A DNA stretch of 64,000 bases, taken from the sequence record MN091626.1; one strand, 5' to 3'. Both the position numbers and the translations under genes were made by a program. Shown here piece by piece: positions 1 to 19,245 of this stretch; position 1 is the first letter of the stretch, and every line of letters starts with the position of its first letter. The notes under the pieces were generated by a model. The model worked only from the letters and a program-made list of their open reading frames with translations, ran no database searches and was not told where the DNA came from.

Positions 1-58
1 AAATTTTACATCTTTATATTTTTATGACTATGAGATTAATAATAGTGATATAGATAAA

Positions 59-454
59 TTGATATATGATAATATTCAAAAACAATTAATTGATGATAGC
101 TATTTTTTATTTGAAATCAATAAAGAAGAAAGATTATTAGTTGATTTTGAAAATAACTTTTTATATGATAAATATAATGAGAAAATAGGAATGGTTTCTT
201 TAAATAGAATTACTTCTTTTGAGAATAAATATAGAGATTTAATATTTATGGAAAAAGAAGATATAAAATATGAAAATTTAATTGATATGGGGTTTAATAT
301 TGTACCTACTTTTGAAATTTCTACTGTATGTAAAAATAAAATAAATAATTTTAGTTACTTTGGTTTTGATATTAAAGATAATAAAAATAAGCTATTAATT
401 GAATGTGATGAAAAAGAATTCAAGATAAATAAAGTTAAGAATAATTTTATATAA
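59..454 (+). CDS. Hypothetical protein, conserved-termini paralog family
   Basis: Ends IECDEKEFKINKVKNNFI, matching the family C-terminal motif; N-terminal YFLFEINKEERLLV. Confidence 0.7.
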   Translation: MIYDNIQKQLIDDSYFLFEINKEERLLVDFENNFLYDKYNEKIGMVSLNRITSFENKYRDLIFMEKEDIKYENLIDMGFNIVPTFEISTVCKNKINNFSYFGFDIKDNKNKLLIECDEKEFKINKVKNNFI

Positions 455-480
455 ATATTAAAATAAATTTAATAAGGATT

Positions 481-1224
481 ATGAATAAGGAGACTTTGAA
501 TTTTATGTATAAAGAAGATGAAATGAATACAGGTCATATAGTTGCTGATTGTGATGAAGTTTTAGTAAATATTTCCCCTAAGATAGTTCAGTTAATGCAT
601 GAAGATTTTGATTATTACAATCAATTCTTCAGACTATCTCCAGAGTATAATTACAGTACTCATTACAATACAGTTCTTAATCGTCCTGAATATTATATTG
701 ACCAATGGTTAGTAAGAAAAGATGTTTATGAAAGATTTTCTGAAGATGAAGTTAATGAAGCTAGAAATAGGTTACAAAATGAAATTATATTTAAAAAAGA
801 TTTATACGATACATTAGAACCAACAAATTTAGCTAAAAGTTTATCATATACAATCAATACACCTTTAATGAATAGATTATCAATTGTAACTAAAACTTCT
901 GATAATAACTTAAAATCTAAAGAGAAATTTTTGAAAACTTTATTTAGAGGAAGTATGGAAAAGGTTGATATTTATTATCTTGAATCAGATGAAAAGAAAT
1001 CAGATGTAATTAATACATTAGGTTATGTTACTAGAATATATGAGGATGAAGTTAGTAATATTAAAGACATTATTATGAATTGTGATAATGTTATGCAAAC
1101 TGGTATCGATATTCCTTCATTAGGATATAACCAAAAATTAGATGAAGCAACTATTATGAAAGCTAAAGAAAAAGAAATAGACTTAAATTATTTTAGTTAT
1201 ATGAGTAATAGTTTAGTTAATTAA
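481..1224 (+). CDS. HAD-superfamily phosphatase, probable 5'(3')-deoxyribonucleotidase
   Basis: HAD motif I near the N-terminus (HIVADCDEVL = hhhDxDxxL), later T/K residues and an acidic motif IV-like segment (RIYEDE). Confidence 0.6.
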   Translation: MNKETLNFMYKEDEMNTGHIVADCDEVLVNISPKIVQLMHEDFDYYNQFFRLSPEYNYSTHYNTVLNRPEYYIDQWLVRKDVYERFSEDEVNEARNRLQNEIIFKKDLYDTLEPTNLAKSLSYTINTPLMNRLSIVTKTSDNNLKSKEKFLKTLFRGSMEKVDIYYLESDEKKSDVINTLGYVTRIYEDEVSNIKDIIMNCDNVMQTGIDIPSLGYNQKLDEATIMKAKEKEIDLNYFSYMSNSLVN

Positions 1225-1232
1225 TAATTATT

Positions 1233-1285
1233 GCCATGTTAAGTTTATAGCTTAACATGGCTTTTATATATTTATTTTTTTTTTA
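1233..1285 (+). terminator. Intrinsic terminator
   Basis: GCCATGTTAAG/CTTAACATGGC inverted repeat followed by T tracts. Confidence 0.8.
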
Positions 1286-1313
1286 TAAAATAAGATTGGA
1301 AGTGAAATGTTAG

Positions 1314-2825
1314 ATGAAAATAGATATGATCAACGTTGATCAAATTATTACAGCCTATGAAGCTAAAGAAGTTACCAATCCTATTTTCTTTGATTCAGGA
1401 ACTTTACCTAAAGAAGACGGTTTATTCTCATATGAAATATTTGGTTTAATAGGTACTGATGAAAGAAAGAACAATGTGGGGTGGATTAATTTAGGTGGTA
1501 AATACTTAAATCCTGTAGCGTATAAAGCTATGAAAGAATTAGATAAGAATATAGATTTATGTATTCAAGGATCTGATTACTTTAAAATTGAAAAAGGACA
1601 ATTAGTTCCAGATGAAAATGGTGAAACTGGATTAAATTTCCTATACGATAATTATGAAAATCTTAAATTTAGAAAAAATGATTCTCGTATCCGAAATGAA
1701 AAAATTGATATGCTTAAAAATACTCCTAAAGATAGAATATTTACAGATAAATGGCTTGTAATACCTGCTTTCTATCGTGACTTTAACCCTAATGAAACTT
1801 CAGGAGAAATTCAAGATACTGAAGAAATAAATGATATGTATGCGAGTATTTTAAGATCTGTAGATTCAATTAGTTTTAACTCATTTGATTTTGTAGCTAA
1901 TACGACTAAATATAATATTCAAAATAAATTATTTGAAATATACGTTAAATTAACTTCAGGTGAACTATCAGGTAAAACTGGTATGATGCAAAGAAATATT
2001 TTAGGTAAGACAGTAGATAATAGTACTCGTTCAGTTATTTCATCACCTAAAATCAATTCAAATAAATGGAATGAAATGCAAATTGAATTCGGTCAATTAG
2101 GTGTTCCATTAACTCAATTAGTAACATTGTTCTTACCTTTCTTTAGTAAATATATTATAGACTTTATTGAAATTCATAAAGATGCTTTCCAAACTGCTAC
2201 TGGAACTGATGAAAAGGAATTAACATTAGAAGAAGTATATGAACAATTTGATGATAAATCTATTAAGAATATGTTAGAATACTTTATTAAAGACCCTAAT
2301 GAAAGATTTAGTCCTATATATGTAAATGATAGACAAGGTAAACGTCATAAAGTTAAATTATTTGAAAATACTTTAGGTAGAACTTTTACTGTAATTGATT
2401 TACTTTATATAGCTGCTACAGAAATATGTGAAGATAAGTATGTGGTTTATTCAAGATATCCGATTGAAAATTTCTTGAATGTGGCTCCTGCTAAAATTAA
2501 AATACTAACTACAGTTGATACAATTCCAGAAATTACTTTAGATGATATTGTACTTAAAGATTATCCTAAAGTTGTTCATGAATATCCTGTTGATGAAGAT
2601 GTATTTATAGATACTGCTATTATACACAACAGTTATGCTGGAGCACTTGGAGCAGACTTTGATGGTGACATGATCTCTATAAGATCTCTATGGACAGTAG
2701 AAGCTAATAAAGAAGCTAATAAACTTCTTAATAAGAAAACTAACTATCTAAACTACACTGGTAATTCAGTACGTAATTTAGGTAATGAATCAGTTCAAGC
2801 TTTATATTCTTTAACTAAAGAATAA
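1314..2825 (+). CDS. rpoC: Phage multisubunit RNA polymerase beta-prime subunit, N-terminal/catalytic part
   Basis: Catalytic GADFDGD motif; DGLFSYEIFG; LGKTVDNSTRSVI; SRYP. Ends just after the QALYSLT segment, the split typical of jumbo-phage RNAPs. Confidence 0.92.
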   Translation: MKIDMINVDQIITAYEAKEVTNPIFFDSGTLPKEDGLFSYEIFGLIGTDERKNNVGWINLGGKYLNPVAYKAMKELDKNIDLCIQGSDYFKIEKGQLVPDENGETGLNFLYDNYENLKFRKNDSRIRNEKIDMLKNTPKDRIFTDKWLVIPAFYRDFNPNETSGEIQDTEEINDMYASILRSVDSISFNSFDFVANTTKYNIQNKLFEIYVKLTSGELSGKTGMMQRNILGKTVDNSTRSVISSPKINSNKWNEMQIEFGQLGVPLTQLVTLFLPFFSKYIIDFIEIHKDAFQTATGTDEKELTLEEVYEQFDDKSIKNMLEYFIKDPNERFSPIYVNDRQGKRHKVKLFENTLGRTFTVIDLLYIAATEICEDKYVVYSRYPIENFLNVAPAKIKILTTVDTIPEITLDDIVLKDYPKVVHEYPVDEDVFIDTAIIHNSYAGALGADFDGDMISIRSLWTVEANKEANKLLNKKTNYLNYTGNSVRNLGNESVQALYSLTKE

Positions 2826-2863
2826 CTATATATTATAATTATAGTATATAGGAGGTTATTTTT

Positions 2864-4573
2864 ATGAATGATAGAACAAAGAAATTTAAAGAAAAATTAG
2901 CAGAAAGACATCCAGATAGATATGAATTACTGTCTGAATATGAGGGTTCTAACTCCCTTATCAAATACAAATGTTTGAGATGTAATAATATTTATACAAG
3001 ACATGCTGGAAATATATACAAAAAGAATGCTAAATGTAAAGGATGTCATGTCAAAAAATATGATACTGAATGGTTTAAAGAAAAATTATTTAAAAAAATG
3101 GATATTAATGAATATTCTTTGTTATCTGAATATAAAGATACAAAGGAAAAAGTAAAAATGAAACACAATAAATGTGGTAAAATATTTGAAGCTACACCTA
3201 ATAGACTATTATCTGGAGACAAATGTCCTCATTGTGCTGGTAATATTAAAAAAACCATAGATGACATATTTGAAAATTTTAAAAGTAAAATGAATAATGG
3301 TGATGATTATGAGTTAATTAAAGATGATCTATATAATGAATATGCTAATATAGATTCATTTGTCCACATAAGACATAAAAAATGTAATAACATTTTTAAA
3401 AAAAGAGCTAGATATATGAGTAGAACAAAACCTTCTAAATGTCCTCATTGTGCCGGTAATATTCAAAAAACAAATGAAGATTTTTCTTCATTTGTTTCAA
3501 ATATTACTAATGGTGAATATGAATTAATTAGCGAATATGTAAATACACATGAAAATGTAAAAATGAAACATAATAAATGTGGAAATGTATATTTGATTAG
3601 ACCTACAAACTTTATATCACATAATCATAGATGTCCTAAATGTTCATCCTCTAGAATGTTTTCAAATAAAGAAAAAGAAGTTTTAGATTTTATAAAATCT
3701 TTTTATAAAGGTGAAATCGTAGAGAATGAAAGAAAATTATTAAAAAATAATAAAGAAATAGACATTTATTTACCAGAATTAAAAATTGCTATAGAATTTA
3801 ATGGTCTTTATTGGCATTCTGAAGCTAGACTTAATAATGCAAAAAAATATCATTATGAAAAAATGAAAGAGTGTGAAGAAAAAAATATAAGATTAATAAC
3901 ATTATTTGAAAATGAATGGGATTTCAAAAAAGATATAGTCAAAAGTAAAATAAAACATATTTTGGGTTATAATAACTCTAAAAAGATATATGCTAGAGAT
4001 TGTTACATTAAAACTTTAGATAATGAAACTAAAAATTCTTTTTTAGAAAATAATCACATACAAGGAAAAGATATAAGTAAAATAAGGTTAGGTCTGTTTG
4101 GAAAAAATGATGAAAAGTTATATTCAGTTATGACTTTTGGAAAAATGAGAAGATCTCTTGGTAATAAAGTTTCAAGAGATGGAGAATATGAATTGATTAG
4201 ATTTGCATCCGATATAGATTATTTAGTAATTGGTGGATTTTCAAAAATTCTAAAATATTTCTTAAATAACTATGAAGTATCTAAAATAAAAACTTATGCA
4301 GATCTTAGATGGTCAAATAAAAATAATAATGTATATGAATCATACTTTCATCTATCACACTTATCAAAACCTAGTTATTTTTATACACATTCAAATAGTA
4401 AGATAGAAAAAAATAAATATGTAAATAGGTATTCAATGCGTAAACATTTGCTAAAAGATAAATTCCCAAACAGCTACAAAGATGATTTAACTGAAAGAGA
4501 AATATTAGCTAAAGAAAACTATTTCAGAGTATGGGATTGTGGAAATTTAGTATTTGAATATTGTAAAGAATAA
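2864..4573 (+). CDS. Free-standing Zn-finger-repeat PD-(D/E)xK endonuclease (Hef-like homing endonuclease)
   Basis: About 4 repeats of YEL(L)SEY...K(H/C)xxC...KCPxC; nuclease motif EIDIYLPELKIAIEFNGLYWHS; C-terminal domain ending RVWDCG. Confidence 0.8.
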   Translation: MNDRTKKFKEKLAERHPDRYELLSEYEGSNSLIKYKCLRCNNIYTRHAGNIYKKNAKCKGCHVKKYDTEWFKEKLFKKMDINEYSLLSEYKDTKEKVKMKHNKCGKIFEATPNRLLSGDKCPHCAGNIKKTIDDIFENFKSKMNNGDDYELIKDDLYNEYANIDSFVHIRHKKCNNIFKKRARYMSRTKPSKCPHCAGNIQKTNEDFSSFVSNITNGEYELISEYVNTHENVKMKHNKCGNVYLIRPTNFISHNHRCPKCSSSRMFSNKEKEVLDFIKSFYKGEIVENERKLLKNNKEIDIYLPELKIAIEFNGLYWHSEARLNNAKKYHYEKMKECEEKNIRLITLFENEWDFKKDIVKSKIKHILGYNNSKKIYARDCYIKTLDNETKNSFLENNHIQGKDISKIRLGLFGKNDEKLYSVMTFGKMRRSLGNKVSRDGEYELIRFASDIDYLVIGGFSKILKYFLNNYEVSKIKTYADLRWSNKNNNVYESYFHLSHLSKPSYFYTHSNSKIEKNKYVNRYSMRKHLLKDKFPNSYKDDLTEREILAKENYFRVWDCGNLVFEYCKE

Positions 4574-4584
4574 TTTAAAAAACT

Positions 4585-4615
4585 GAGGTAACGGACAATT
4601 ATAGTTCGTTACCTC
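4585..4615 (+). terminator. Probable terminator hairpin
   Basis: GAGGTAACG(G)AC/GTTCGTTACCTC inverted repeat just after the 2864..4573 stop; weak T tract. Confidence 0.6.
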
Positions 4616-4649
4616 TATTATATTGCAAAAATGTATCTAATGATATTTT

Positions 4650-4664
4650 AAATATATATTATAA
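4650..4664 (+). promoter_or_regulatory. Putative phage early promoter AAATATATATTATAA
   Basis: Exact 15-mer recurs at 4650, 5079, 7736, 12735, 31866, 55831, 58680, always intergenic and upstream of a + strand gene. Confidence 0.75.
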
Positions 4665-4717
4665 TTATGAAGTTGATAATTATTAATCAACTAATTTAAA
4701 TAAAAGGATGATTTAAT

Positions 4718-5017
4718 ATGAATGAAATTAAAATAATGGATACTGAACTACTACAGGAAGCTGTAGAAGGAAAAGAGAATAACGGCGGAGGTTACGAACA
4801 TACTCGTACCGTTTTCGAATTCCAAGGAAAACAAGGAGTTTTCGAAGACACTTCTTGTGGTGATTTCGGTAGCAGATTCTTCATGGAATGGGATGGAAAA
4901 ATGGCTATGTGGGGAAGTATGATTGATGAAGAACTCGAATACAGTGAATTCGATGAACAAGAACAATCAGAACTTCTAAAGCATTTTAGAGTTCCTGTTT
5001 TTGAAGAAACAATCTAG
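4718..5017 (+). CDS. Small acidic hypothetical protein in a stand-alone transcription unit
   Basis: RBS AAAGGA, own promoter and terminator; C-ending codons unusual for this genome. Confidence 0.8.
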   Translation: MNEIKIMDTELLQEAVEGKENNGGGYEHTRTVFEFQGKQGVFEDTSCGDFGSRFFMEWDGKMAMWGSMIDEELEYSEFDEQEQSELLKHFRVPVFEETI

Positions 5018-5054
5018 GACATTAATGTCCTAGATTTCTTTTATTTTTTTTTTT
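5011..5054 (+). terminator. Intrinsic terminator
   Basis: AATCTAGGAC/GTCCTAGATT hairpin plus long T tract. Confidence 0.85.
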
Positions 5055-5078
5055 CTAAAAATATTCTATTTTATGATT

Positions 5079-5093
5079 AAATATATATTATAA
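5079..5093 (+). promoter_or_regulatory. Putative early promoter
   Basis: Exact AAATATATATTATAA copy. Confidence 0.7.
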
Positions 5094-5177
5094 AAATAGA
5101 TGCAATTAAATATATTGAAAGATGTTGTTTTATATGTAAAGTTTTAGAAGAATCTAATAAGGGAGCTGAAATAGATA

Positions 5178-5660
5178 ATGATATATTACAAAAATAAAGT
5201 AAATGGTGAAATATACGAAGTTAATGATATTCATAGAAAAGATGATGCTTTTTATTATGTGTTTGGTAATGAATTTAAAAAAGAAAGAATAGGATTATAT
5301 GAATCAGTGGGTAAAAAAATTGATTTATTAGATAAAGATAAAGGACATAAAGAATTAAACTTCCAATTAAATTATGACTCATCTAGATTATTTTTAGTTA
5401 CACATATGAAATATGATAATAATAATCCTTTTGCACCTAAAGCAGTAGATTTAAAGAATCAAAATTTTGTCGCATCCGATTCTTCAGAAGATCTTTACTA
5501 TATATTATATAAAAGAATGTGTAATGCAATAGATATACCTTTATTAAATTATAATGTATTATTAAAAGAATTTAATTTTGATAATGAAGATATATTTAAA
5601 ATAATATCAGAAGATTGTAAAGAAGTAAGAGATTTTAAAGTTAGAAATCTTTTTAAATAA
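5178..5660 (+). CDS. Conserved-termini family protein; close paralog of 6388..6879
   Basis: Starts MIYYKNKVNGEIYEV, ends FKIISEDCKEVRDFKVRNLFK; nearly identical first ~35 aa to 6388..6879. Confidence 0.8.
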   Translation: MIYYKNKVNGEIYEVNDIHRKDDAFYYVFGNEFKKERIGLYESVGKKIDLLDKDKGHKELNFQLNYDSSRLFLVTHMKYDNNNPFAPKAVDLKNQNFVASDSSEDLYYILYKRMCNAIDIPLLNYNVLLKEFNFDNEDIFKIISEDCKEVRDFKVRNLFK

Positions 5661-5675
5661 AAGGAGAAATTTTAA

Positions 5676-6377
5676 ATGGAAAATATTAAATTGTATAAAA
5701 ATCTAGAAAATGGTGATAAATTTACTTTATCTAAAGATGAAATTAATAATGGTAGATTTCTTTATAAAGTCATGAAACAAATAAAAAGTAATTTTTATCC
5801 ATATTATAATTATGAAGACCAACCCATTACAACCAATGGAAACTCTTATTTAATTAATAAACAACTGAATTTCCATTTTTATACACATTCTGATATTATT
5901 ATAAATTTTAAAAATTTAATTGGAATAGATGAAGATATAATAATTAAGAGTAATGAAAATAAAGAAAGAAATATTTCATCTTCAATTGTTTGTTTCTCTG
6001 ATTCTAATACAAATAATGATAGAATTTATGAAAATATATTTCAAATTGTTTTGAATACAAAAAAGGCTAAGAAAATAAATCGTATGCTAGATAAATATAA
6101 AAGCGATAAATATGAAATATCTTCTTATACAATGGATAAAAATGAAGTACATTTTAAAGTTAGTTTCAAACAAGATTATTTGTCTGATAAGAATAATGAC
6201 GTTTATGATTCTCTAGATGAATTGATATATTATATATTAAAGGGCCTTAAAATTAAGATTGACAATTCGTATATGTATTTTATGGATTATCTAAGATGGA
6301 ATTTGGAATTTATTGCTGAAGAAATTACTGATGAGGACGAAATTAAAAAATACTTAATTAAAGAAAAATTTAAATAA
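5676..6377 (+). CDS. Conserved-termini family protein
   Basis: RBS AAGGAG; ends EEITDEDEIKKYLIKEKFK. Confidence 0.8.
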   Translation: MENIKLYKNLENGDKFTLSKDEINNGRFLYKVMKQIKSNFYPYYNYEDQPITTNGNSYLINKQLNFHFYTHSDIIINFKNLIGIDEDIIIKSNENKERNISSSIVCFSDSNTNNDRIYENIFQIVLNTKKAKKINRMLDKYKSDKYEISSYTMDKNEVHFKVSFKQDYLSDKNNDVYDSLDELIYYILKGLKIKIDNSYMYFMDYLRWNLEFIAEEITDEDEIKKYLIKEKFK

Positions 6378-6387
6378 GGAAGTGTAA

Positions 6388-6879
6388 ATGGATATGATAT
6401 ATTACAAAAATAAAGTAAATGGTGAAATATATGAAGTTAATAATATTCATAGAAAAGATGATGCATTTTATTATGTATTCAATAATGAATTTAAAAAAGA
6501 GAATTCGTCTTTTTATAAATCTTATGGTAAAAAGATTGATTTATATGATGAAGACGTAGGAAGTATAAAATTGGAGTTTTTCTTAATTTATGATTTTATT
6601 AATCTTCATTTAACTACACACTTTTCTTGGGATTTTAATAATATTCCTTTTATACCTAAAAATATAGAATTAACAAATCAAAATCTTGTCATATCAGACT
6701 CTTCAATTGATCTTTATTATTTATTCTATAAAAGAATATGTGATGTGATAGATATAAATATGGCACATTATAATATTCCATTAGGAAAATTTAATTTTGA
6801 TAATGGAGATATATTTGAAATAATTTCAGAAGATTGTAAAGAAGTAAAAGATCTTAAAGTTAGAAATCATTTTAGATAA
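6388..6879 (+). CDS. Conserved-termini family protein; paralog of 5178..5660
   Basis: Ends FEIISEDCKEVKDLKVRNHFR. Confidence 0.8.
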   Translation: MDMIYYKNKVNGEIYEVNNIHRKDDAFYYVFNNEFKKENSSFYKSYGKKIDLYDEDVGSIKLEFFLIYDFINLHLTTHFSWDFNNIPFIPKNIELTNQNLVISDSSIDLYYLFYKRICDVIDINMAHYNIPLGKFNFDNGDIFEIISEDCKEVKDLKVRNHFR

Positions 6880-6884
6880 GGAGA

Positions 6885-7070
6885 TTGATAAATATGAGAA
6901 AAGAAATTAGAAAAAATGAAAGTAAACAATTGACTTTACAAGAAAAATGGGAAATTGATGCAGAATTATACAGAGAGAAAAATAAAGACAAGAAAAAAAT
7001 AAAAGGACCAATTATAGGAAAGAAAGTTTCTAAAGAAGAAATGGAAAGAATCTTAAAAGGAGAAGAATAA
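6885..7070 (+). CDS. Small basic hypothetical protein
   Basis: RBS AAGGAG upstream; fills the gap between family genes. Confidence 0.6.
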   Translation: MINMRKEIRKNESKQLTLQEKWEIDAELYREKNKDKKKIKGPIIGKKVSKEEMERILKGEE

Positions 7071-7071
7071 A

Positions 7072-7725
7072 ATGTTTAATCACAATATCTTACTATATAA
7101 ACCTATTAGCATTGATTATAATGATTTTATTGAGTTAAACAAAGAAAAATATAAAAATGATAGAGAATATATTAAAATGATAAATGTATTTAACTTAATG
7201 GAACTGTTAAAAATAGACTCTTTTAAAGATAAAACTTTCTTTGAAACTGAATGTAAATTAAAATTAAGAGGTTATGATGAATATAAAAATATAAAAGTGG
7301 TTTACAATCAATCATTAGACAGTGATCCAATATTCTCTAATTTAAAAAACTTTAATGCAGAATTAGATATTATAAGTAAAGAAAGAGATAATACTTATAT
7401 GACTGAAGAATTATTATATGAATACAATATGATGAAAATGAGCACATGTATAAATGATAAAGCTAACACTATTACAATTAAAATAAAAAATTTCATTAAT
7501 TCAAATAAAGAAAATTTTAATAACGATTTTGAATTCCTTATTAAAGAATTTGAAAATAATTTATTAAAGAATTTAACAGACCTCCATAAATATGAAGACT
7601 TACAACTTCTAATTAATAATGAATATCACAGTTTAAAAGATATTAGTGTATATAATGAAAAAATATTTAGACCTGCTACTGATAAAGAATTTAAGAATTA
7701 TTTAGTTAAAGAAGGATTTAGATGA
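7072..7725 (+). CDS. Conserved-termini family protein
   Basis: Ends FRPATDKEFKNYLVKEGFR. Confidence 0.78.
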   Translation: MFNHNILLYKPISIDYNDFIELNKEKYKNDREYIKMINVFNLMELLKIDSFKDKTFFETECKLKLRGYDEYKNIKVVYNQSLDSDPIFSNLKNFNAELDIISKERDNTYMTEELLYEYNMMKMSTCINDKANTITIKIKNFINSNKENFNNDFEFLIKEFENNLLKNLTDLHKYEDLQLLINNEYHSLKDISVYNEKIFRPATDKEFKNYLVKEGFR

Positions 7726-7735
7726 AGTATGTATT

Positions 7736-7750
7736 AAATATATATTATAA
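7736..7750 (+). promoter_or_regulatory. Putative early promoter followed by hairpin
   Basis: Exact motif, then GAGATAATGAAT/ATTCATTATCTC. Confidence 0.72.
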
Positions 7751-7817
7751 AAATGAGATAATGAATTAATATGATTCATTATCTCTATAATAATTTAATT
7801 AGGAGAGTGGAAAAGAT

Positions 7818-8426
7818 ATGATTTTAAAAGAGAATAGATTTTATTATAATAAAGATATTAATGAGCTTTTTATAATTGGTAAAGATAAAAGTGATATTAA
7901 CGATAAGATAAATAAATTCTATTATAAAAAATTATTAGAAAAAAATTTAGATTACTATCATTTAAATAATGACCTTTATTATAATAGAAATCTACGTTTT
8001 GATTTAATTGATAATGAAAATATTTATTTTAGTAATATGTATAATGGAATTAGAAAGAAACTTCCAGTGGAAGCCTTAGAATTTGCATATATAAGAATTA
8101 GAGATAATCAAGTAGTTGTACAATTAGAAACTTTTATTACTAGAGGTGACGATCCAAACTTTTTAGAAGTTGAAAAGAATGCAACGAGTGCTAGCATAAC
8201 AATGGTAAAAGATTTTTATGAAAAAGATCTTATGAGTTATAATGTTTATGAAAATGATTTAGATAAACTATCTAATTTGTTGGACACAATGCTTAAAGAA
8301 GAAAATAATGGAAGTATTAAAATTTTTATAAATGACATTGATATATTTGAACCTCATGCATATTTTAAAGAATTAGAAGATGAAAGAGAAATTAAAAATA
8401 TTTTGGTTAAGAAAAATTTTATATAA
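7818..8426 (+). CDS. Conserved-termini family protein
   Basis: FYYNKDINELFII ... FKELEDEREIKNILVKKNFI. Confidence 0.8.
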   Translation: MILKENRFYYNKDINELFIIGKDKSDINDKINKFYYKKLLEKNLDYYHLNNDLYYNRNLRFDLIDNENIYFSNMYNGIRKKLPVEALEFAYIRIRDNQVVVQLETFITRGDDPNFLEVEKNATSASITMVKDFYEKDLMSYNVYENDLDKLSNLLDTMLKEENNGSIKIFINDIDIFEPHAYFKELEDEREIKNILVKKNFI

Positions 8427-8440
8427 AGGAGATAAATATA

Positions 8441-9061: not shown

Positions 9062-9074
9062 GGATAGAATAAAT

Positions 9075-9638: not shown

Positions 9639-9655
9639 AATAAGGAGGATTAAAT

Positions 9656-10279: not shown

Positions 10280-10280
10280 A

Positions 10281-10892: not shown

Positions 10893-10949
10893 TTTAATTA
10901 ACTTTCTTTTATATTAATAAATACAATGAAAGAGAGTTGAATATAATAA

Positions 10950-11729
10950 ATGTCTGAAACTAATGAAATTGATTTAATATCACAAATCAATGATATGATG
11001 GATGAATATAAGATGTTAGTAAAATTTAAAGATAAAATGGAAAATAAAGAAATTCAATTAGAAAATCGTATACAGGATTTAACTAAGAATTTGAAATATC
11101 CTAAACATACATTCGTATCTAATATGGAAGCTAACATTATTAGTGTAGAAAAAGAAATTAAAGACACTATTATGCAAATGAAAAATGTTAAAAAAGATAT
11201 TATTGACTTAACTATGAAAGCTCAGAAAATGGCTGAAGATGATGAATCTGAAGATAATTATAAAACTCTTGCTAAAAATGTACTTAATGAGCTTAATAAT
11301 ATGTCTAATAAAGATATTTTAAACAGTATGATGGAACCTGAAGAAGTAAATGATGAAGATACTGATTTTAGTGAAGAATTAGATGCAAAATTATCGCAAT
11401 TAGATGAAGAAGAGAAATCTATCAATAAAGAAGTAGATCAAAAAGAAGAGTTGAGTCAAGAAATTAATGAATTAGATCAACAAGATTTATCTTCTATATT
11501 GAAAGTCTATAAAGGTACATTACAATTCTTTGTTGTAGGAGATTCTCCTGAAGAATATGAATTAGTAGTTGCTGATATGGATATGAATATTATTGAAGAA
11601 GATGAGATGGAAGATGAATATCCAGAATTATTTACTATGACTAGGGATCTTATCTTTGAAGATATTGAAGGTAATGATGAAATAGTTAAAGATGAATTTG
11701 GAAATATTTATCAAAAAGCAGAATTTTAA
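10950..11729 (+). CDS. Acidic coiled-coil hypothetical protein
   Basis: Heptad-rich N-half, D/E-rich middle; AACT-N6-TA element at 10900-10911. Confidence 0.8.
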   Translation: MSETNEIDLISQINDMMDEYKMLVKFKDKMENKEIQLENRIQDLTKNLKYPKHTFVSNMEANIISVEKEIKDTIMQMKNVKKDIIDLTMKAQKMAEDDESEDNYKTLAKNVLNELNNMSNKDILNSMMEPEEVNDEDTDFSEELDAKLSQLDEEEKSINKEVDQKEELSQEINELDQQDLSSILKVYKGTLQFFVVGDSPEEYELVVADMDMNIIEEDEMEDEYPELFTMTRDLIFEDIEGNDEIVKDEFGNIYQKAEF

Positions 11730-11765
11730 ATTATTTTAACCCATAATATATTAATACAATATATT

Positions 11766-12164
11766 ATGGGTATTTATTATATGTGGAGGTTATGTATTAT
11801 GGGATTTGAGTTAACAATATATGGAATAAATAAAAGTAAGCAAAGAGATTTACAATGGTATATTAATCATCATAGATATACTAAAGAGAAGAACCATTTA
11901 TTTGAATTAGAATTATATAAACCACATGAACTTTTTGATGTATTAAAATATAAAGTAATTGATTATAAAAATGAAGATGGTTTTGATATTCAAGTAATAG
12001 ATGAAAATACTTTAAAAGAGTTAATGGAAAATGAATTAAGAGAAAATAATTTTGAATATGGATTAACTCAATACTATAGACTTATGACTGAAATATCCAG
12101 AAATAAATATTTTATAAATAATGATAAATTTGATTTTTATCTAATCTTAGATGCATCATTTTAA
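11766..12164 (+). CDS. Hypothetical protein (likely start at 11799, behind GGAGG)
   Basis: ORF track; GGAGG precedes the later ATG. Confidence 0.7.
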   Translation: MGIYYMWRLCIMGFELTIYGINKSKQRDLQWYINHHRYTKEKNHLFELELYKPHELFDVLKYKVIDYKNEDGFDIQVIDENTLKELMENELRENNFEYGLTQYYRLMTEISRNKYFINNDKFDFYLILDASF

Positions 12165-12184
12165 TAATAGGAGATGGAATAGAT

Positions 12185-12310
12185 ATGTTAAAAAGATTAT
12201 ATAGTTTATTAACTAAGAAAAAATTTGAAAGAAAATTATATGAATTTAAATTTAATTATCAAGATCATGAGCATTTAAATCAAGTTCATAGAGATTCAAA
12301 TAATATATAA
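12185..12310 (+). CDS. Small hypothetical protein (41 aa, not in the ORF track)
   Basis: AGGAG RBS then MLKRLYSLLTKKKFERKLYEFKF...; fills the gap between neighbours. Confidence 0.5.
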   Translation: MLKRLYSLLTKKKFERKLYEFKFNYQDHEHLNQVHRDSNNI

Positions 12311-12329
12311 TATGAAAGGATGATTATTA

Positions 12330-12731
12330 ATGTTATCAGAATATAGATTAAATTCAAATAAAGAAAATATTAAACAACTATTAAGAGATTATGGTTTTAA
12401 AAAAGATTCTTATACTAAAGCTTTAATATATAGAAAACGTGTAACTGATCCGAATGATATTTTATTCATAGTGGCTGAAGTGGTTATTGAAACTAATTCA
12501 GATCTAGTTAAATTAAATTACTATGATAGTAAACATAATAGATTTAATCCTTCTAATGAGTCGCCAGAAGTTCAAAAAGGTTTAAGTATATTAGAAGATA
12601 TGAAAGAAAAAGAATTATTAATTGAACCAGAATTAACTCAAAATGTAGAAGAAAAAGAAGTTCTTGATAGACTTAAAGAACAACGTGAAGAAATGGAAAA
12701 TGGTCAAGTATCACCCAATTCTGAAAATTAG
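12330..12731 (+). CDS. Hypothetical protein
   Basis: RBS AAAGGA; ORF track. Confidence 0.75.
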   Translation: MLSEYRLNSNKENIKQLLRDYGFKKDSYTKALIYRKRVTDPNDILFIVAEVVIETNSDLVKLNYYDSKHNRFNPSNESPEVQKGLSILEDMKEKELLIEPELTQNVEEKEVLDRLKEQREEMENGQVSPNSEN

Positions 12732-12734
12732 AAT

Positions 12735-12749
12735 AAATATATATTATAA
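12735..12749 (+). promoter_or_regulatory. Putative early promoter followed by hairpin
   Basis: Exact motif, then ATCCCAATACTA/TAGTATTGGGAT. Confidence 0.72.
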
Positions 12750-12811
12750 AAATGTTATCCCAATACTATTAAATTAGTATTGGGATTATTATAATAGAAG
12801 GAGTTAAATAA

Positions 12812-13588
12812 ATGGAGAAAATTAATAAATACTACATTAGTAAATCAAAAGATGAATTTATGGAATTAACTTTCAATGAAAATGAAACACTCTATTTTGA
12901 CTTTAAGTGGAAAGTTTTAAGTGAGCTATTCACTACAATGCAAATAAATTATAATAAGAGATTTCTTATATCTCATGAAGAACATGATGACGATGGTTTA
13001 GTTGGGCTTAGAATAAATTTCAATGCTTTTCCCACAGTTAAATACAAATATAAGGGTAAGAAAAATAAAATGGAACTTCTTATATACGCTATAATACGCT
13101 TTAGTCTAAATGAGGAAGACGATAATTATATTAAGTTTAAAGCTGTTCCTTTATATAATAATAGTGAAATAGGGAAAAGATTATTTAGTAAAAGATCTGG
13201 TATATTTGATGATAATGGTGAACTAGATTTACCGCATGACTTTAATGAAGAAGTTATGATTCGCTTTTTAAAATATTTTAAAAGTCATATACAAAAAGGG
13301 AAAAGACCTTTAGAACTCAAGGACGATTTACACAAGATGTTTACTGCTACAAATAAATTAATTTTTGAATTACTAGATCAGATACAAGATCATTCAGATA
13401 TTGAATTTCTTATTGCACCCGATTGGGATTTTAGTGGTAAAGAAATGGAAAAAGAAAAAGGTTTTAGTTTTGAAAAAGAATATGATAAGTATATCAGTTT
13501 AAATGATTTTGATGTTGATGCATATTTTAGAGAAATAACTGATGAGAAAGAAATTAAAAAATTTAAAGTTAAGAAAGGATTTTCCTAA
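12812..13588 (+). CDS. Conserved-termini family protein
   Basis: YYISKSKDEFMEL ... FREITDEKEIKKFKVKKGFS. Confidence 0.8.
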   Translation: MEKINKYYISKSKDEFMELTFNENETLYFDFKWKVLSELFTTMQINYNKRFLISHEEHDDDGLVGLRINFNAFPTVKYKYKGKKNKMELLIYAIIRFSLNEEDDNYIKFKAVPLYNNSEIGKRLFSKRSGIFDDNGELDLPHDFNEEVMIRFLKYFKSHIQKGKRPLELKDDLHKMFTATNKLIFELLDQIQDHSDIEFLIAPDWDFSGKEMEKEKGFSFEKEYDKYISLNDFDVDAYFREITDEKEIKKFKVKKGFS

Positions 13589-13589
13589 T

Positions 13590-14399
13590 ATGAAAAATAA
13601 TACAAAATATTTTATAGATAAAGAAAGAGATGAATTAATTGAAATTGATAAGAATTATCTTAACCGATATGAATATATTGCATATGTATTAACTACTATG
13701 GATATTAATAATCTTTTAAGCAGTAAAGGATATGCTAAAGCTTTCATAGATAATATTTCTAAAGAAGAAGGTTGTATGAATTTTCATGATATAGATTCTG
13801 ATAGCGATATTTATTTTATGGACAAACATAATAAAAATGATACTCTTAAAAGATTTAATACTAATTTTCATATTAATTTTAATGCTGGTAGAATGGATAA
13901 AATTGAAAGTGGAGAATTTAAATTAGATTTTCATTTTGATAATTCATTATATAAAGAATATTTCAATATAATCACTAATGGTTTAGTAAATGAAAATAAT
14001 TTAGTTAATGAAGGAATAAATGAAAAAATGAGAGCTCTTATAAATATTGAATCATTTGAAAAAAATTTATATGAGATCAAATATAGTAATGAATCATTTA
14101 TGGATTTAAATTTTTCAATATCGGGATATGAGAAAAGTCCTATTATTAAATTTACAGAAAAATTTAAAGATTTATTCTTTATAATATTATATCAGAATAA
14201 TCTTAGTGTATTAATGTCTCTTTATGAGATTAAATATATGTATAAAGACGATATAGAATTTTATATTAGTTTCTCCAGTAAGGGTGGCGGTTTAATTAAT
14301 TTATTACACCTAATAGAAATTGATGAAAATAATTTATTTAAAGAATTAACAGATGAAAAAGATATTAAAAATTTTAAAGTTAAGAAAGGATTTTCATAA
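13590..14399 (+). CDS. Conserved-termini family protein (start moved from 13542 to the ATG after the upstream stop)
   Basis: YFIDKERDELIEI ... FKELTDEKDIKNFKVKKGFS. Confidence 0.8.
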   Translation: MKNNTKYFIDKERDELIEIDKNYLNRYEYIAYVLTTMDINNLLSSKGYAKAFIDNISKEEGCMNFHDIDSDSDIYFMDKHNKNDTLKRFNTNFHINFNAGRMDKIESGEFKLDFHFDNSLYKEYFNIITNGLVNENNLVNEGINEKMRALINIESFEKNLYEIKYSNESFMDLNFSISGYEKSPIIKFTEKFKDLFFIILYQNNLSVLMSLYEIKYMYKDDIEFYISFSSKGGGLINLLHLIEIDENNLFKELTDEKDIKNFKVKKGFS

Positions 14400-15139
14400 T
14401 GGAATATAATAATTACTATAGATATAAATTAGATGGAGAAATACTTCACTTTGATATGGATAGAACTGACTTAAGAAGGGATATATTGGCTGAAATATTT
14501 ACTAAAATGTATATGAAATATATTAATAAAGATGAAGAAATGATTAAAACGTCAGAAAATTTTATTTATCGATCTGATCTTTCTTTAGAATATTCTCATT
14601 TTAAAGATAAAGTATGTGAAATCAGACAAATTTCTAAAATAATGGGTAAAAACCATGTAAAAGATTTATTAATTTACGATACAGATATTAGTTTAGGATT
14701 TAATTCTATTTTAGATGGAGCTATATTTAAAAAAGATTTTCCAGAAGGATCTTTTCATGACAAAATAGAAAGTAACATGAATAGAAGATATTTAATTTTA
14801 AGTGATAATATAAGTCATACTAGTGAAAGTTTTGCTGATTTATATGACAAAGATTATATTTTAAATTTTGAAGAAGTAGAATTTTTAGTCAAAGAATTTA
14901 ATAGAACGTTTTTAAATTATCTTATGGATTTAATGAGTTATGGAAATCTAGAATTAAATGTTAGAAAATCGGAGTTAGCATATTTTATGACAGGGATATA
15001 TACAAAAATGAAAAAACATGAAGACAGATTATTCCCTATATTCGATTATAAATTTTTACTTAATGAATCTGGATTATTTGAAGAGATTACGGATGAAAAA
15101 GTTATTAAAGAATACTTAGTGAAAAATAATTTTAAATAA
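14399..15139 (+). CDS. Conserved-termini family protein
   Basis: YYRYKLDGEILHF ... FEEITDEKVIKEYLVKNNFK; TAATG coupling with the upstream gene. Confidence 0.8.
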   Translation: MEYNNYYRYKLDGEILHFDMDRTDLRRDILAEIFTKMYMKYINKDEEMIKTSENFIYRSDLSLEYSHFKDKVCEIRQISKIMGKNHVKDLLIYDTDISLGFNSILDGAIFKKDFPEGSFHDKIESNMNRRYLILSDNISHTSESFADLYDKDYILNFEEVEFLVKEFNRTFLNYLMDLMSYGNLELNVRKSELAYFMTGIYTKMKKHEDRLFPIFDYKFLLNESGLFEEITDEKVIKEYLVKNNFK

Positions 15140-15153
15140 AGGAGATCAATATA

Positions 15154-15951
15154 ATGAGTGCAATGAAAAGTAATAAAAAATACTTCCTATGTAAAATAAA
15201 TGATGAATTATTTGAAGTTGATAAAAACAATAGAGGTTCATTTTTATATGACTATTTGCCTTTAATAATAGCTGAAAAAATAATTAATCAGACTGAAAAA
15301 GATTCATATGAAACTAGTGCAATGGATGTTTATTATAAAAAAGAAGATAATATAATTAAAGGTAATTTAAAATTTTTATCAAGATGTTTACTTCCTGTCC
15401 TGTATAATTTCAATAATAAAAATTCATTTAAAACCGTTATGACTCTCGCAGATTTTAAATTTAAAAGGGATGCTAACAAATCTACTTTTAGTATAGATAA
15501 AAATAGTGTTAATGATAAAATACTATTTCAAATGAGACCTTTAGGAAATGAAATTGATGATATTTTATTTAATAGTATTATAAGTGACCTTTTAAATGAA
15601 GATGACGAAATAGAAATGAAACAAATGTTATTAGTTGGTAATTTTGAAAAATTATTAAACGAAATTGATAATCAAAATATAAAACATCATGATGATTTTA
15701 AAATTTTAATCAAAGATATATTTAATATTTATATTAATTTATTAAACTCTTTAAGTCATCATCTTAATATTGAATTTTTCTTTTCTGAATCTTCTTTTTT
15801 AGACATGTTAAATGTTTATGATTATGATATCATTAATAATAAAGATAGTTATAAAATAAATATTTTTGAAGATGATTTAGATGGAATATTTGAAGAAATT
15901 ACCGATGAAAAATTTGTTAGAGAATATTTAGTGAAAAATAATTTCAAATAA
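15154..15951 (+). CDS. Conserved-termini family protein
   Basis: YFLCKINDELFEV ... FEEITDEKFVREYLVKNNFK. Confidence 0.8.
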   Translation: MSAMKSNKKYFLCKINDELFEVDKNNRGSFLYDYLPLIIAEKIINQTEKDSYETSAMDVYYKKEDNIIKGNLKFLSRCLLPVLYNFNNKNSFKTVMTLADFKFKRDANKSTFSIDKNSVNDKILFQMRPLGNEIDDILFNSIISDLLNEDDEIEMKQMLLVGNFEKLLNEIDNQNIKHHDDFKILIKDIFNIYINLLNSLSHHLNIEFFFSESSFLDMLNVYDYDIINNKDSYKINIFEDDLDGIFEEITDEKFVREYLVKNNFK

Positions 15952-16007
15952 AATTAAAAATTTATAGTAACGGAAATATATTTATCAATAGGAGTTGAAA
16001 CTGGATA

Positions 16008-18743
16008 ATGAAGATTAAAAGATTAAAGTTAAAGAATTTTATCGGTATTTATGCTGGTATGGGATTAAAAGAAGTTGAAATTGATTTTAGTAAAAGTAAA
16101 AATAATATGATTATGCTTCTTGGAGATAACGCTTCAGGTAAGACGACAGTTATGTCTAATCTTAATCCATATAGAGAAACTAATGATCAACGTAAAACTA
16201 TAGTATTAGAAGATGAAAAAGGTATAAAAGAGATTGATTATATTAAGGGTAATGATGTTTATGAAATTAAACATCATTATGGTAAAAACAGTTCTCAAAA
16301 TAAATCATTCATTAAGAAAAATGGTGAAGAACTTAATGAAAATGGTGGTATTAAATTATTCAATGAAATAGTAGATAAAGAATTAGGTGTATCTAAAGAA
16401 TACTTTACTGTAGGTCGTTTAGGCGATAACGTATCAAACTTCATTGACTATACTACAGGTGATCGTAAATCATATATCAATAAATTTGTACCTAATATTG
16501 ATAGATACTTAGAAGCTTATAAAGTAGCTAATGAGAAATTAAAAATTATTACTAAAGATTTAAAATCACTTAGATTTGATTTAGACAAATATAAAGAATT
16601 TGATGAAATCAAAAAAGAAAAAGAGAATTTAGAAACTTTAATTGATCAATTACAAAATGAACTTGATGAAGCTAATAAAGATAAAACAACTCATGAAACT
16701 AAAATGAATTCTATCATGGAAGATAAGTACAAAGAGATTCATCCAACTGAATATAAAAATCAATTAATTAATGAAATTAATGAACTTAATCAAGAATTAG
16801 AAAAAGAAAGAAAGTTAAAAGAAGATAATGAGAATTTAAATAAATATACTATTGAATCCGCTAATGAGAAAAAAGATAAAATAGATACTATATTAAATAA
16901 TACTAATAATGAGTTGACTTCTGTTGAAAAAGATAAAGAGAATAATCAAGATAAATTAGATGATTTAATCAGTAGAAAATCTAAAATAGAATCTCGTATG
17001 AATGCTATCAAATTTAATGAAGATTATGATGCTTCTGATGAAATTGATTCAATTCTTGAAGGATATAAAGAAGATTTAGAAGGTATTAAAGATGATGTAG
17101 ATATTTCTAGAGGGTCTTTTGTAAGTGAATTCGGTTTACAAATTAAAGATAATATTAAAGAGGATTCATTAAGATTATATGTAAATGATTTAATTTCTAA
17201 GGTAGATAATTTTAAAGAATTTATTAATGATAATGAATTTAAATATGGTTCTATTCGTGGAGATTTTGAAAGTGAAATTAAAGATAATAATGAAAAAATT
17301 TCTATGAACCAGAATGAATTTAATGAAATTAATACTAAGCTTAATCAAATTAAAGGCAAATCAGACTTATTAAAAATATTAGATCAAAAAGATCATGATC
17401 ACTATAATGAATGTGTATTTGTTCCTTTAGTAGCTGACTTTAAAGACAATGAATTTGATTCAATCTCTGAATTAGAAAATAAAGGTAATCAACTTTATAA
17501 AGATAATCAAGAATTAGAAAAAGATAATAAATTATTATCTAATCATATTGACTTATTACGTAAATTTAATGACATACTTACTAGTAGAAATAGTTTAATT
17601 GAATATATTGGTTTTGAAATGATTGATATTGATAGTATTGAAGAAATATTTACAAATGGTAATACATTCTCTAGTGAACTAAATAGACTTAATTCATTAA
17701 TTGAAAAGACAAATGAAATTCGTACTAATGAAACTAATAGAGATAAATTGACTATTGAATTAGAGAGAAAAGAAAATGCTCTTAAAGAAGATTATTCTAA
17801 TAAGAAAATATTAGATCAATATAAAGAAGATAAAGAAGATTTAGTTAAACAAATTGAAGAAATTAAAAATAAAAATAATGAAATTTCTGAGAATCTTAAT
17901 TATCTTAATGGTCGTAAAGAAAAAGCAATTACTAACTTAAATATTATTAATGAATTTATTAATCTAACAGAGAGATCTGAAGAAATTAAATTAAAAATGA
18001 AAGATAAAAATGATATAGTTGATGACATTGATAAGGATCTTTCAAAATTAAGTAATTTATATGAACTTAATCAAAAAGCAGACAATAAAATTCAATCTAT
18101 TAAAGATAATTTAACTATGAAGAAAAATGATTTAGAATCTACTAAAGAAAAATACTTTGCAGTTAATTCTATTATTACTAAGATTGATGAAATTGAATCA
18201 GTGTTATGGAAATATAATATGGTGGTAGATTCATTAAATCCTAAGAAAGACTCTATACCATTAATATTCATTACTAATTATCTTAAAGATATTGCAGTAA
18301 GTACTAATGAATTACTTTCAGTTGCTTATAATAATTCATTTAAAATTGACTTTGACTTAACAGATAAAGATTTCTTTATTAATGTGTATAAAGGTAATGG
18401 AACTGAGCTGAAAGATATTAAAGAAGCTTCTCAAGGAGAAACAGCTTTAACTAATATTAGTTTATCTTTATCATTATTAAACAAAGTATCTCAAGATTAT
18501 AATATTCTATATTTAGATGAAATGGACTCAACATTAGATTCTAATAATAGAAGAAGATTTGTTGATGTAATTGACAGACAAATTGAATTAATGGGTCTAG
18601 AACAAGTATTCTTGATTAGTCATAATGATGAATTCTATAGTGCTAATATTGACTTAATTTTACTTAAAGGATACGAAAGTAAAATTGACATTAATAATGA
18701 AGAAATGATGCAAGGTAAAAATGTATTATTTAAAGTAAACTAA
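16008..18743 (+). CDS. sbcC: SbcC/Rad50-like SMC ATPase (recombination nuclease subunit)
   Basis: Walker A GDNASGKTT, long coiled coil with central HxxxxC..C-like hook region (HDHYNEC), signature ASQGE, Walker B LYLDEMD, H-loop LISH. Confidence 0.9.
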   Translation: MKIKRLKLKNFIGIYAGMGLKEVEIDFSKSKNNMIMLLGDNASGKTTVMSNLNPYRETNDQRKTIVLEDEKGIKEIDYIKGNDVYEIKHHYGKNSSQNKSFIKKNGEELNENGGIKLFNEIVDKELGVSKEYFTVGRLGDNVSNFIDYTTGDRKSYINKFVPNIDRYLEAYKVANEKLKIITKDLKSLRFDLDKYKEFDEIKKEKENLETLIDQLQNELDEANKDKTTHETKMNSIMEDKYKEIHPTEYKNQLINEINELNQELEKERKLKEDNENLNKYTIESANEKKDKIDTILNNTNNELTSVEKDKENNQDKLDDLISRKSKIESRMNAIKFNEDYDASDEIDSILEGYKEDLEGIKDDVDISRGSFVSEFGLQIKDNIKEDSLRLYVNDLISKVDNFKEFINDNEFKYGSIRGDFESEIKDNNEKISMNQNEFNEINTKLNQIKGKSDLLKILDQKDHDHYNECVFVPLVADFKDNEFDSISELENKGNQLYKDNQELEKDNKLLSNHIDLLRKFNDILTSRNSLIEYIGFEMIDIDSIEEIFTNGNTFSSELNRLNSLIEKTNEIRTNETNRDKLTIELERKENALKEDYSNKKILDQYKEDKEDLVKQIEEIKNKNNEISENLNYLNGRKEKAITNLNIINEFINLTERSEEIKLKMKDKNDIVDDIDKDLSKLSNLYELNQKADNKIQSIKDNLTMKKNDLESTKEKYFAVNSIITKIDEIESVLWKYNMVVDSLNPKKDSIPLIFITNYLKDIAVSTNELLSVAYNNSFKIDFDLTDKDFFINVYKGNGTELKDIKEASQGETALTNISLSLSLLNKVSQDYNILYLDEMDSTLDSNNRRRFVDVIDRQIELMGLEQVFLISHNDEFYSANIDLILLKGYESKIDINNEEMMQGKNVLFKVN

Positions 18744-18779
18744 AATTTGTTATTAAAAATTTGAGAGGAGTAACTCTAT

Positions 18780-19067
18780 TTGAATATTAATGTTAATAAA
18801 CCTTTAGATGCTAAATTCGAAAAAGAAATGCATGATAATATTATAAATGCATTCATTGATAGCACGTTAGGACCAATCCTTTATGAAAAATTAGAAGAGC
18901 TATGTAAAATTCATGATAAAAATATAAAACTTTATTATGACTATGATATGTTAGATTCTAAAAAATTAAAACATAGTTTGATTAAATTTTATGAAGAAAA
19001 TAATTTAGATGAAGACGAATTCATTATAAAGATTAAAAAAGAAGTTGTTAAAAATGCGTTTAAATAG
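18780..19067 (+). CDS. Hypothetical protein, possible minimal member of the conserved-termini family
   Basis: Ends KKEVVKNAFK, matching the terminal (V/I)KxxF(K/R) motif. Confidence 0.65.
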   Translation: MNINVNKPLDAKFEKEMHDNIINAFIDSTLGPILYEKLEELCKIHDKNIKLYYDYDMLDSKKLKHSLIKFYEENNLDEDEFIIKIKKEVVKNAFK

Positions 19068-19083
19068 AAAAGGATGATTTTAT

Positions 19084-19236
19084 ATGAATAAAAAGAAATT
19101 ATGGATAATGACAGGTATAACTTTTTTAACATCTTTCACGATAAATTTTATTATTCTATATTATAAAGATAAATATAGACAGGATGATATTGATACATCT
19201 GAAGATCCATTTATGAAAGGTCCATTATTTATATAG
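19084..19236 (+). CDS. Small single-pass membrane protein (50 aa, not in the ORF track)
   Basis: RBS AAAGGA; MNKKKLWIMTGITFLTSFTINFIILYY: basic N-terminus plus hydrophobic helix. Confidence 0.6.
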   Translation: MNKKKLWIMTGITFLTSFTINFIILYYKDKYRQDDIDTSEDPFMKGPLFI

Positions 19237-19245
19237 TTTAAATAT

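Follow-up and report, generated by a model that had tools for sequence, protein, structure and literature searches.

Background

The internal-protein (IP) loci of T-even phages encode proteins with an N-terminal capsid-targeting signal that is cleaved off; the genes are late and their products are packaged in the virion. Among the large viruses, the poxvirus ankyrin/PRANC genes and the multigene families (MGF) of African swine fever virus (ASFV) are lineage-specific and are presumed to be host-interaction genes. Furthermore, adaptors of the SspB type have a C-terminal tethering peptide that binds an unfoldase domain. Here we describe a set of small tandem genes in a stretch of 64,000 nucleotides (the window) of Staphylococcus phage PALS_2 (MN091626.1, record bases 186001-250000). 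All of them encode the same nearly fixed C-terminus, which we call the tail. We think that they probably form one lineage-specific family of early genes, with about 30 copies in PALS_2, that is, fast-evolving paralogs of one fold whose turnover is mediated by the tails. Positions are those of the window unless the record is named.

PALS_2 is an AR9/PBS1-like jumbo phage, from the group with uracil DNA. The early promoter of AR9, used by the injected virion RNA polymerase, consists of a 13-base AT-rich element, six bases and the start point (PMC5312081), and the same promoter core lies upstream of 29 genes of phage MarsHill (bioRxiv 10.1101/2020.12.14.422802). Our locus resembles the early operons of AR9/PBS1-like phages in this promoter element and in its neighbours, which are the genes for the virion RNA polymerase beta' subunit, a g142-like protein, an SbcC-like ATPase and a DNA polymerase. 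On the other hand, and unlike PALS_2, neither AR9 nor Listeria phage LPJP1 has genes of the tail family at the syntenic site, where the acidic g142-like gene is kept.

A common tail on 30 genes

The original prediction, made from the letters of the window, listed 14 open reading frames (ORFs) and a weak fifteenth with a common C-terminal motif. Every one of the 14 ends as described there, with the same strictly C-terminal motif and a nearly fixed end of 16 residues. Thirteen of them (all but the one listed from position 59) make up three operons, each behind an exact 13-base element of the AR9 type. The elements and genes are as follows; aa stands for amino acids.

1-454, + strand: g196 (PALS2_196), family member cut by the window start (full gene at record 185903-186454, 183 aa)
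5079-5098, + strand: early-promoter 13-mer and spacer, head of operon 1 (g201-g205); expected start base A, not G
5178-5660, + strand: g201 (PALS2_201), 160 aa, family member, 65% identical to g203
5676-6377, + strand: g202 (PALS2_202), 233 aa, family member
6388-6879, + strand: g203 (PALS2_203), family member; annotated start at 6394
7072-7725, + strand: g205 (PALS2_205), 217 aa, family member, final gene of operon 1
7736-7755, + strand: exact early-promoter match, head of operon 2, with an inverted repeat directly after it
7818-8426, + strand: g206 (PALS2_206), 202 aa, family member
8441-9061, + strand: g207 (PALS2_207), 206 aa, family member whose distal tail and 3' flank are like those of MarsHill n12
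9075-9638, + strand: g208 (PALS2_208), 187 aa, family member
9656-10279, + strand: g209 (PALS2_209), 207 aa, family member, full-length paralog of g207 (28% identity)
10281-10892, + strand: g210 (PALS2_210), 203 aa, final family member of operon 2; its tail is the LY01 crossover partner
12735-12754, + strand: exact early-promoter match, head of operon 3, with an inverted repeat directly after it
12812-13588, + strand: g215 (PALS2_215), 258 aa, family member, full-length paralog of g218
13590-14399, + strand: g216 (PALS2_216), 269 aa, family member; joins the g215/g218 profile with tails removed
14399-15139, + strand: g217 (PALS2_217), 246 aa, family member
15154-15951, + strand: g218 (PALS2_218), 265 aa, family member and modelled protein (pLDDT 74, pTM 0.75)
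18780-19067, + strand: PALS2_220, 95 aa, doubtful fifteenth member, more likely the AR9 g138 counterpart

All of these genes are annotated as encoding a "hypothetical protein". The G+C content over the region is 20-25%, and window positions 5000-16000 correspond to MN091626.1 191000-202000 at 100% identity. The ORF listed from position 59 is indeed a member but not a whole gene: it covers the 3' part of PALS2_196, whose start lies 98 nucleotides (nt) before the window.

A strict pattern of the tail matches 18 ORF ends among the 713 ORFs of PALS_2 and nothing inside ORFs. When residues were shuffled (n = 200), it was never found at an ORF end, and on average 0.14 times anywhere. We counted residues in 114 tails from 8 phages, numbering positions from the C-terminus; since this set was picked using the motif, the figures are upper bounds and the count of F is partly circular. 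Position -2 is F in 114/114 tails. Position -6 is V in 86, I in 22 and T in 6, and position -8 is Y in 61 and F in 23. We find K at -10 in 101/114 and at -13 in 93/114, E at -14 in 83/114 and D at -15 in 72/114.

A hidden Markov model (HMM) of the tail, a scan that had been suggested for the terminal motif, revealed a wider family than the one first reported: the C-terminal ends of 30 PALS_2 ORFs are matched with an independent E-value of at most 2.5e-3, and the sole further match below 1e-2 stops two residues short of the stop codon. The 30 ORFs amount to about 11% of the 280 annotated features of PALS_2. Family genes form six or seven clusters, at 70, 75-78, 96-103, 181-186, 191-197 and 199-202 kilobases (kb) of the record, and the clusters outside the window are at record 70086-70643, 75082-77924, 96406-96864, 98735-102697 and 181461-183467. 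PALS2_076-081 are a set of family proteins of about 150 aa which have Tyr at tail position -11 where the window members have Ile, and most of them begin with a Lys-Tyr-Tyr-Lys hairpin. The grouping of tail variants follows genomic neighbourhood.

The aromatic N-terminal motif that had been proposed alongside the tail is real and forms a hairpin in the model of g218 (see below), but it is looser than claimed: [KNE][YF][YF] occurs within the first 25 residues of 14/32 members vs 12/173 other ORFs. The isoelectric point is unremarkable: family proteins are mildly acidic (median 5.6), and so are those of the other ORFs (5.3).

The membership of the ORF at 18780-19067 is doubtful. Its tail match is weak, it directly follows the SbcC-like gene, as g138 does in AR9, and its last residues nearly repeat the C-terminus of AR9 g138 (pairwise E 0.003). 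Judging by place and sequence, it is probably the counterpart of AR9 g138, a different conserved gene, and not a fifteenth member. The family tail may share ancestry with this older conserved C-terminus, or may merely resemble it.

What kind of selection keeps the tail constant can be read from its synonymous sites. Among 753 same-residue codon pairs of paralog tails there are 191 synonymous differences, compared to 220 expected from draws of local codon usage, that is, 87% of the random expectation. Since the synonymous sites are near saturation, the conservation is selected at the protein level. The tail is thus conserved as protein, not as an embedded promoter or RNA element and not simply by recent gene conversion. 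This was the outcome of the synonymous-site comparison proposed for the 3' motif, and it holds for the invariant part.

The strictly terminal position points to one of two roles, a structural keystone or a signal for contact or degradation that all members have in common. The second option would make the tail a C-terminal degradation or docking peptide for a single machine of the host or phage (for instance a protease, an unfoldase or a hub protein), so that all early family members would have a common fate or a common tether while the bodies would still be paralogs. We consider this unlikely, while ranking it first among the alternatives. It agrees with the selection on the protein level, with the strictly terminal position (Phe -2 in all tails, no extension tolerated) and with the presence of the tail even in the genes that close an operon. 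On the other hand, the AlphaFold2 model of g218 (see below) shows the tail as a short strand (246-249) and a helix (252-263) with a predicted local distance difference test (pLDDT) score of about 75, placed directly on the domain with no disordered linker. In addition, when the PDB was searched with the tail profile, no adaptor or tag of solved structure came up, and the only hits, to CCA-adding enzyme, were at chance level (E about 6).

The bodies and their fold

The original prediction saw unrelated, interchangeable payloads between the conserved ends. By BLAST, the middles are indeed mostly without similarity. More sensitive comparisons reveal full-length homology for several of them. Via intermediates in related phages, g215 and g218 are homologous over their full length (about 21% identity). 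In a tail-less iterative search g216 joins them with E-values of 9e-5 to 2e-4, and hhalign aligns it to g215/g218 over 190 columns (E 5e-4). Similarly, g207 and g209 are 28% identical from end to end (hhalign E 9e-5). Further full-length links are g201 with g203 (65%), g205 with cluster n16, and those within g076-g079. The remaining clusters have their best weak matches to the g215/g216/g218 profile at co-linear places, namely in the N-terminal hairpin and first helix and in the late long helix and strand.

The AlphaFold2 model of g218, made from nine sequences, has a mean pLDDT of 74 and a predicted template modelling (pTM) score of 0.75. It begins with a hairpin (strands 8-13 and 18-23), a helix and a five-stranded meander, which are followed by helices, including a long one at 180-204, and a strand. 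Compared with the folds in the PDB, the model gave nothing significant (best E 0.1, template modelling (TM) score below 0.2). The best of these matches, CapZ, Whirly and PUR-like folds, share an antiparallel sheet backed by a long helix and a C-terminal helix with g218; the matches are not significant, and we rejected them as noise.

A Foldseek search of predicted viral structures, with target-normalised TM scores, recovered g218's own entry (TM 0.89) and known paralogs. Furthermore, it linked g218 to bodies of other clusters. The model matches the entry A0A8B6MGT0, which is g207 (100% match), with E 2e-4, probability 1.0, TM 0.51 and 13% identity. It also matches a 202-aa entry, by length of the g206 type (E 1e-4, TM 0.49), and a 215-aa entry from the SA1 accession series that fits a g202-type body (E 3e-4, probability 0.98, TM 0.29). 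A weaker match is a 178-aa entry, by length of the g208 type (probability 0.54). Such a Foldseek comparison of the middles had been proposed; they are mostly unalike in sequence, as expected there, but the model of g218 resembles g207 and the g206- and g202-type entries with moderate TM scores. From the sequence links and the model, it is more likely that the middles are diverged copies of one fold than that they are unrelated domains.

There are several points that weigh against a single family of this kind. At least ten body clusters stay apart in BLAST, profile-profile and iterative HMM searches once the last 20-22 residues (the tail) are removed, and in operon 1 no member but the g202 type has been linked. 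The structural links are moderate (TM 0.29-0.51, root-mean-square deviation about 9-11 A), with Foldseek scores that may be raised by the conserved ends, and for three of the four database entries the cluster was assigned by length alone. The model of g207 is of low confidence (pLDDT 41); the order of its elements resembles that of g218. Finally, the array genes are predicted to be early by their promoter type, and the SA1 transcriptome described below bears on neighbouring genes only.

Evolution and turnover of the arrays

Family bodies have dN/dS ratios of non-synonymous to synonymous change of 0.2-0.8, compared to 0.04-0.23 in the deoxyribonucleotidase-like, beta' and SbcC-like genes; note that dS is near saturation in distant pairs and that some of the pairs with 30% identity are paralogs.

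Across 8 phages the order of orthologs is largely the same; some genes are gained or lost, and there are two changes of position. MarsHill has cluster n12 between g207 and g208, but in Machias, AH12 and PB50 it comes after g209, and the order of g215 and g216 is inverted in SA1. Swapping of orthologs between array positions, a condition attached to the earlier proposal, is thus not the rule, as most of them keep their place. The breakpoints relative to PALS_2 are located in segments that comprise a tail, the intergenic spacer and the following head. For example, g207 of LY01 is like its PALS_2 counterpart as far as mid-tail and then continues with the tail and 3' flank of g210, and g208-g210 are absent. 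The tail of PALS_2 g207, in turn, begins like that of MarsHill g207 and goes on with the tail and flank of MarsHill n12. Both junctions are unequal homologous crossovers inside the tail-coding repeat. Because of crossovers at this place, the tail variants are incongruent with body orthology. The idea that recombination at the conserved ends remodels the arrays is borne out by the two junctions and by the differences in cassette content and order. What we do not see is an exchange of payloads between fixed ends, since the crossovers move or delete whole genes.

These observations bear on the model in which unrelated payload domains sit on a fixed N- and C-terminal scaffold or docking tag and recombination at the ends exchanges them. 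This would explain why most bodies are without detectable sequence similarity, and it is in line with crossovers inside the tail-coding DNA and with the tails of several members being closer to the tail of a non-orthologous gene than to those of some of their own orthologs. On the other hand, there are the chains of full-length homology and the fold common to several clusters, the deleted or inserted units are whole genes, we found no body between foreign ends of a different family, and no payload matches a known domain. We judge this model to be improbable, somewhat more so than a degradation or docking function of the tail.

Distribution

The family seems to be confined to one group of phages. 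Using the last 35 residues as a tblastn query against 50,697 phage records, we found matches only in ten Staphylococcus jumbo phages (uracil-DNA). Word-indexed searches of 5.8 billion proteins returned close orthologs only. The g215/g218 profile matched 5 proteins among 1.84 billion representatives; the one that was traced belongs to Machias, and the remaining proteins match family proteins at the loci of relatives. The 14 IMG/VR hits of a degenerate DNA pattern that covers eight tail residues are all internal and unrelated. Since the tail occurs in ten Staphylococcus phages only and the family is absent from the syntenic site of AR9 and LPJP1, the arrays are insertions specific to the Staphylococcus clade.

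We were not able to find any match above threshold in scans of the family against Pfam, PHROGs and PADLOC, any significant PDB entry in sequence-profile searches, or any Rfam match in window bases 1-20000. The family is not mentioned in those genome papers on this phage clade that were searched.

Early promoters and operons

The first 20 kb contain four exact copies of the 13-mer, at 4650, 5079, 7736 and 12735. The last three are the operon heads, where 5079 precedes g201-g205, 7736 precedes g206-g210 (on to 12731) and 12735 precedes g215-g218. The claim that most members follow an early promoter was therefore loosely worded: such promoters do precede the arrays, but there are three of them for 13 array genes. 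Inside the operons the spacers are 0-17 nt long; either a ribosome-binding site directly follows the stop codon, or stop and start overlap. Stop and start codons overlap or abut in g209/g210 (10279-10283), g215/g216 (13586-13592) and g216/g217 (14397-14401), which suggests translational coupling inside the operons.

The transcriptome of phage SA1 places "ATPase (ORF169)" and DNA ligase in the early class (PMC9414953). From its annotation and number, ORF169 seems to correspond to the SbcC-like gene after the third array, and the early ligase gene directly precedes another cluster of the family.

At many sites genome-wide, a perfect inverted repeat of 9-13 bp begins at about the predicted +1 after the early-promoter element. 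In the window these repeats are at 4670-4695, 7756-7786 and 12757-12784; on the record they are at 37970, 51060, 51852, 68103, 79173, 85219, 93393, 179443, 256653, 266046 (- strand) and 267695 (- strand). Hairpins of this kind are annotated as terminators in Machias and MarsHill, and in PALS_2 the promoter is upstream of the hairpin. Potentially, early mRNAs could carry the hairpin as a 5' stem-loop, or it could belong to the promoter or be a terminator that the next promoter overlaps.

The early promoters also speak against the tail being a virion-packaging signal for proteins injected with the DNA. A signal with variable cargo is known in phages, e.g. in the T4 internal proteins, and annotations in relatives call the SbcC-like neighbour virion-associated. 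However, in the shallow virion proteome of phage DC4, 0/15 proteins fall in the locus-tag range of the arrays, and the g208 ortholog UFVDC4_00032 is absent (PMC10638138). We regard a packaging signal as very improbable. A cargo-loading peptide like those of encapsulins, which are short, C-terminal, set behind a flexible linker on unrelated cargo and have a shell as partner, was rejected, as the tail is continuous with the domain (pLDDT about 75), the bodies appear related and the promoters are early.

Least probable of all is that an embedded promoter, translational-coupling element or recombination site is conserved as DNA or RNA with the protein motif as a by-product, for while the short spacers with their ribosome-binding sites and the use of tail DNA as crossover substrate would suit it, the saturated synonymous sites (191 vs 220) largely refute it, no Rfam match was found, and the tail as a promoter copy was rejected because the only promoters are the three intergenic ones, none of them in a tail.

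Genome context

Three genes of the surroundings serve as landmarks.

1314-2825: virion RNA polymerase beta' gene (Pfam RNA_pol_Rpb1_2)
11013-11729, + strand: acidic backbone gene between the arrays, not a family member; homolog of AR9 g142 (pairwise E 3e-6)
16008-18743: SbcC-like ATPase gene

Along this conserved backbone, the gene for the catalytic subunit of DNA polymerase comes before a 5'(3')-deoxyribonucleotidase-like gene and the virion RNA polymerase beta' gene, and these come before the arrays, the SbcC-like ATPase gene and DNA polymerase. The gene at 11013-11729 is conserved backbone, and the Staphylococcus-specific arrays are inserted on both its sides. In Listeria phage LPJP1 there is a similar-looking gene at the equivalent place, as judged by eye only.

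Between the beta' gene and an ORF at 4718 lies an ORF of 569 aa (2864-4573, + strand) with repeated zinc-ribbon/treble-clef motifs (Pfam DUF4379, Zn_ribbon_8). Since phage S6 has no counterpart at the same site, it looks like a mobile insertion similar to those of homing endonucleases. The early-promoter 13-mer in front of it, at 2824, has one mismatch, and this variant is inactive according to the AR9 paper.

Discussion

In our preferred explanation, that of one early family of fast-evolving paralogs, the arrays would have originated from a single alpha/beta protein through successive tandem duplications. Strong purifying selection would keep only the N-terminal beta-hairpin and the C-terminal strand and helix, which end one residue after the invariant Phe. 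The remainder would evolve several-fold faster than the neighbouring core genes, so that most of it is now below what sequence comparison can detect, with the fold probably kept. As the tail DNA is alike between neighbours, unequal homologous crossovers would delete, insert and re-order whole genes, and because of these crossovers in tail-coding DNA the content of the arrays would differ between related phages. The invariant tail would be either a structural keystone of the fold or the contact to one shared partner. Regarding the original prediction as a whole, this explanation retains the invariant C-terminal element and the recombination at the ends but not the unrelated, interchangeable payloads.

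The proteins would be made early, from the promoter type of the virion RNA polymerase, and would likely be diversified binders directed against host factors, in host takeover or counter-defence. The early promoters, the restriction to one clade, the fast evolution and the turnover in copy number fit accessory host-interaction genes. One such function is of special interest, as no inhibitor of the uracil-DNA glycosylase Ung is known in the Staphylococcus uracil-DNA phages (PMC10303552). We found no likeness of the family to the uracil-DNA glycosylase inhibitors Ugi, SAUGI and p56 in the PDB sequence-profile and PDB fold searches; nevertheless, the family would be a reasonable place to look for an Ung inhibitor. 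More speculatively, the C-terminal helix could be a common plug by which about 30 diversifying early binders attach to a single host or phage hub, so that the family would be an adaptor library, and some member or members of it could be the missing Ung inhibitor. We would call this a long shot, below the modular model in probability.

If the genes are one family, about 1 gene in 9 of this clade of therapeutic-candidate phages belongs to a single undescribed family, and about 30 "hypothetical proteins" per genome become a single problem. In addition, the arrays would be a clean natural example of tail-mediated unequal crossing-over behind the turnover of phage genes. Early and fast-evolving genes are also an obvious place to search for functions in host takeover and counter-defence, Ung inhibition included.

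How does the family compare with the systems mentioned at the beginning? The T-even IP loci are similar in that a short conserved terminal peptide is found on divergent small tandem proteins and that the cassette content varies between phages. They differ in that the PALS_2 motif is C-terminal, that the PALS_2 operons have early promoters and that none of the proteins is in the 15-protein virion proteome of DC4. The poxvirus ankyrin/PRANC and ASFV MGF genes are an analogy, since there is no relation in sequence or fold and the PALS_2 proteins are from a bacterial virus, 150-270 aa long and without repeats. Nevertheless, they share fast-evolving tandem paralogs, unequal recombination and a conserved C-terminal module beside a variable region with the genes described here. 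What we find in PALS_2 is thus a multigene family that is undescribed and restricted to one clade, and whose kind of evolution is familiar.

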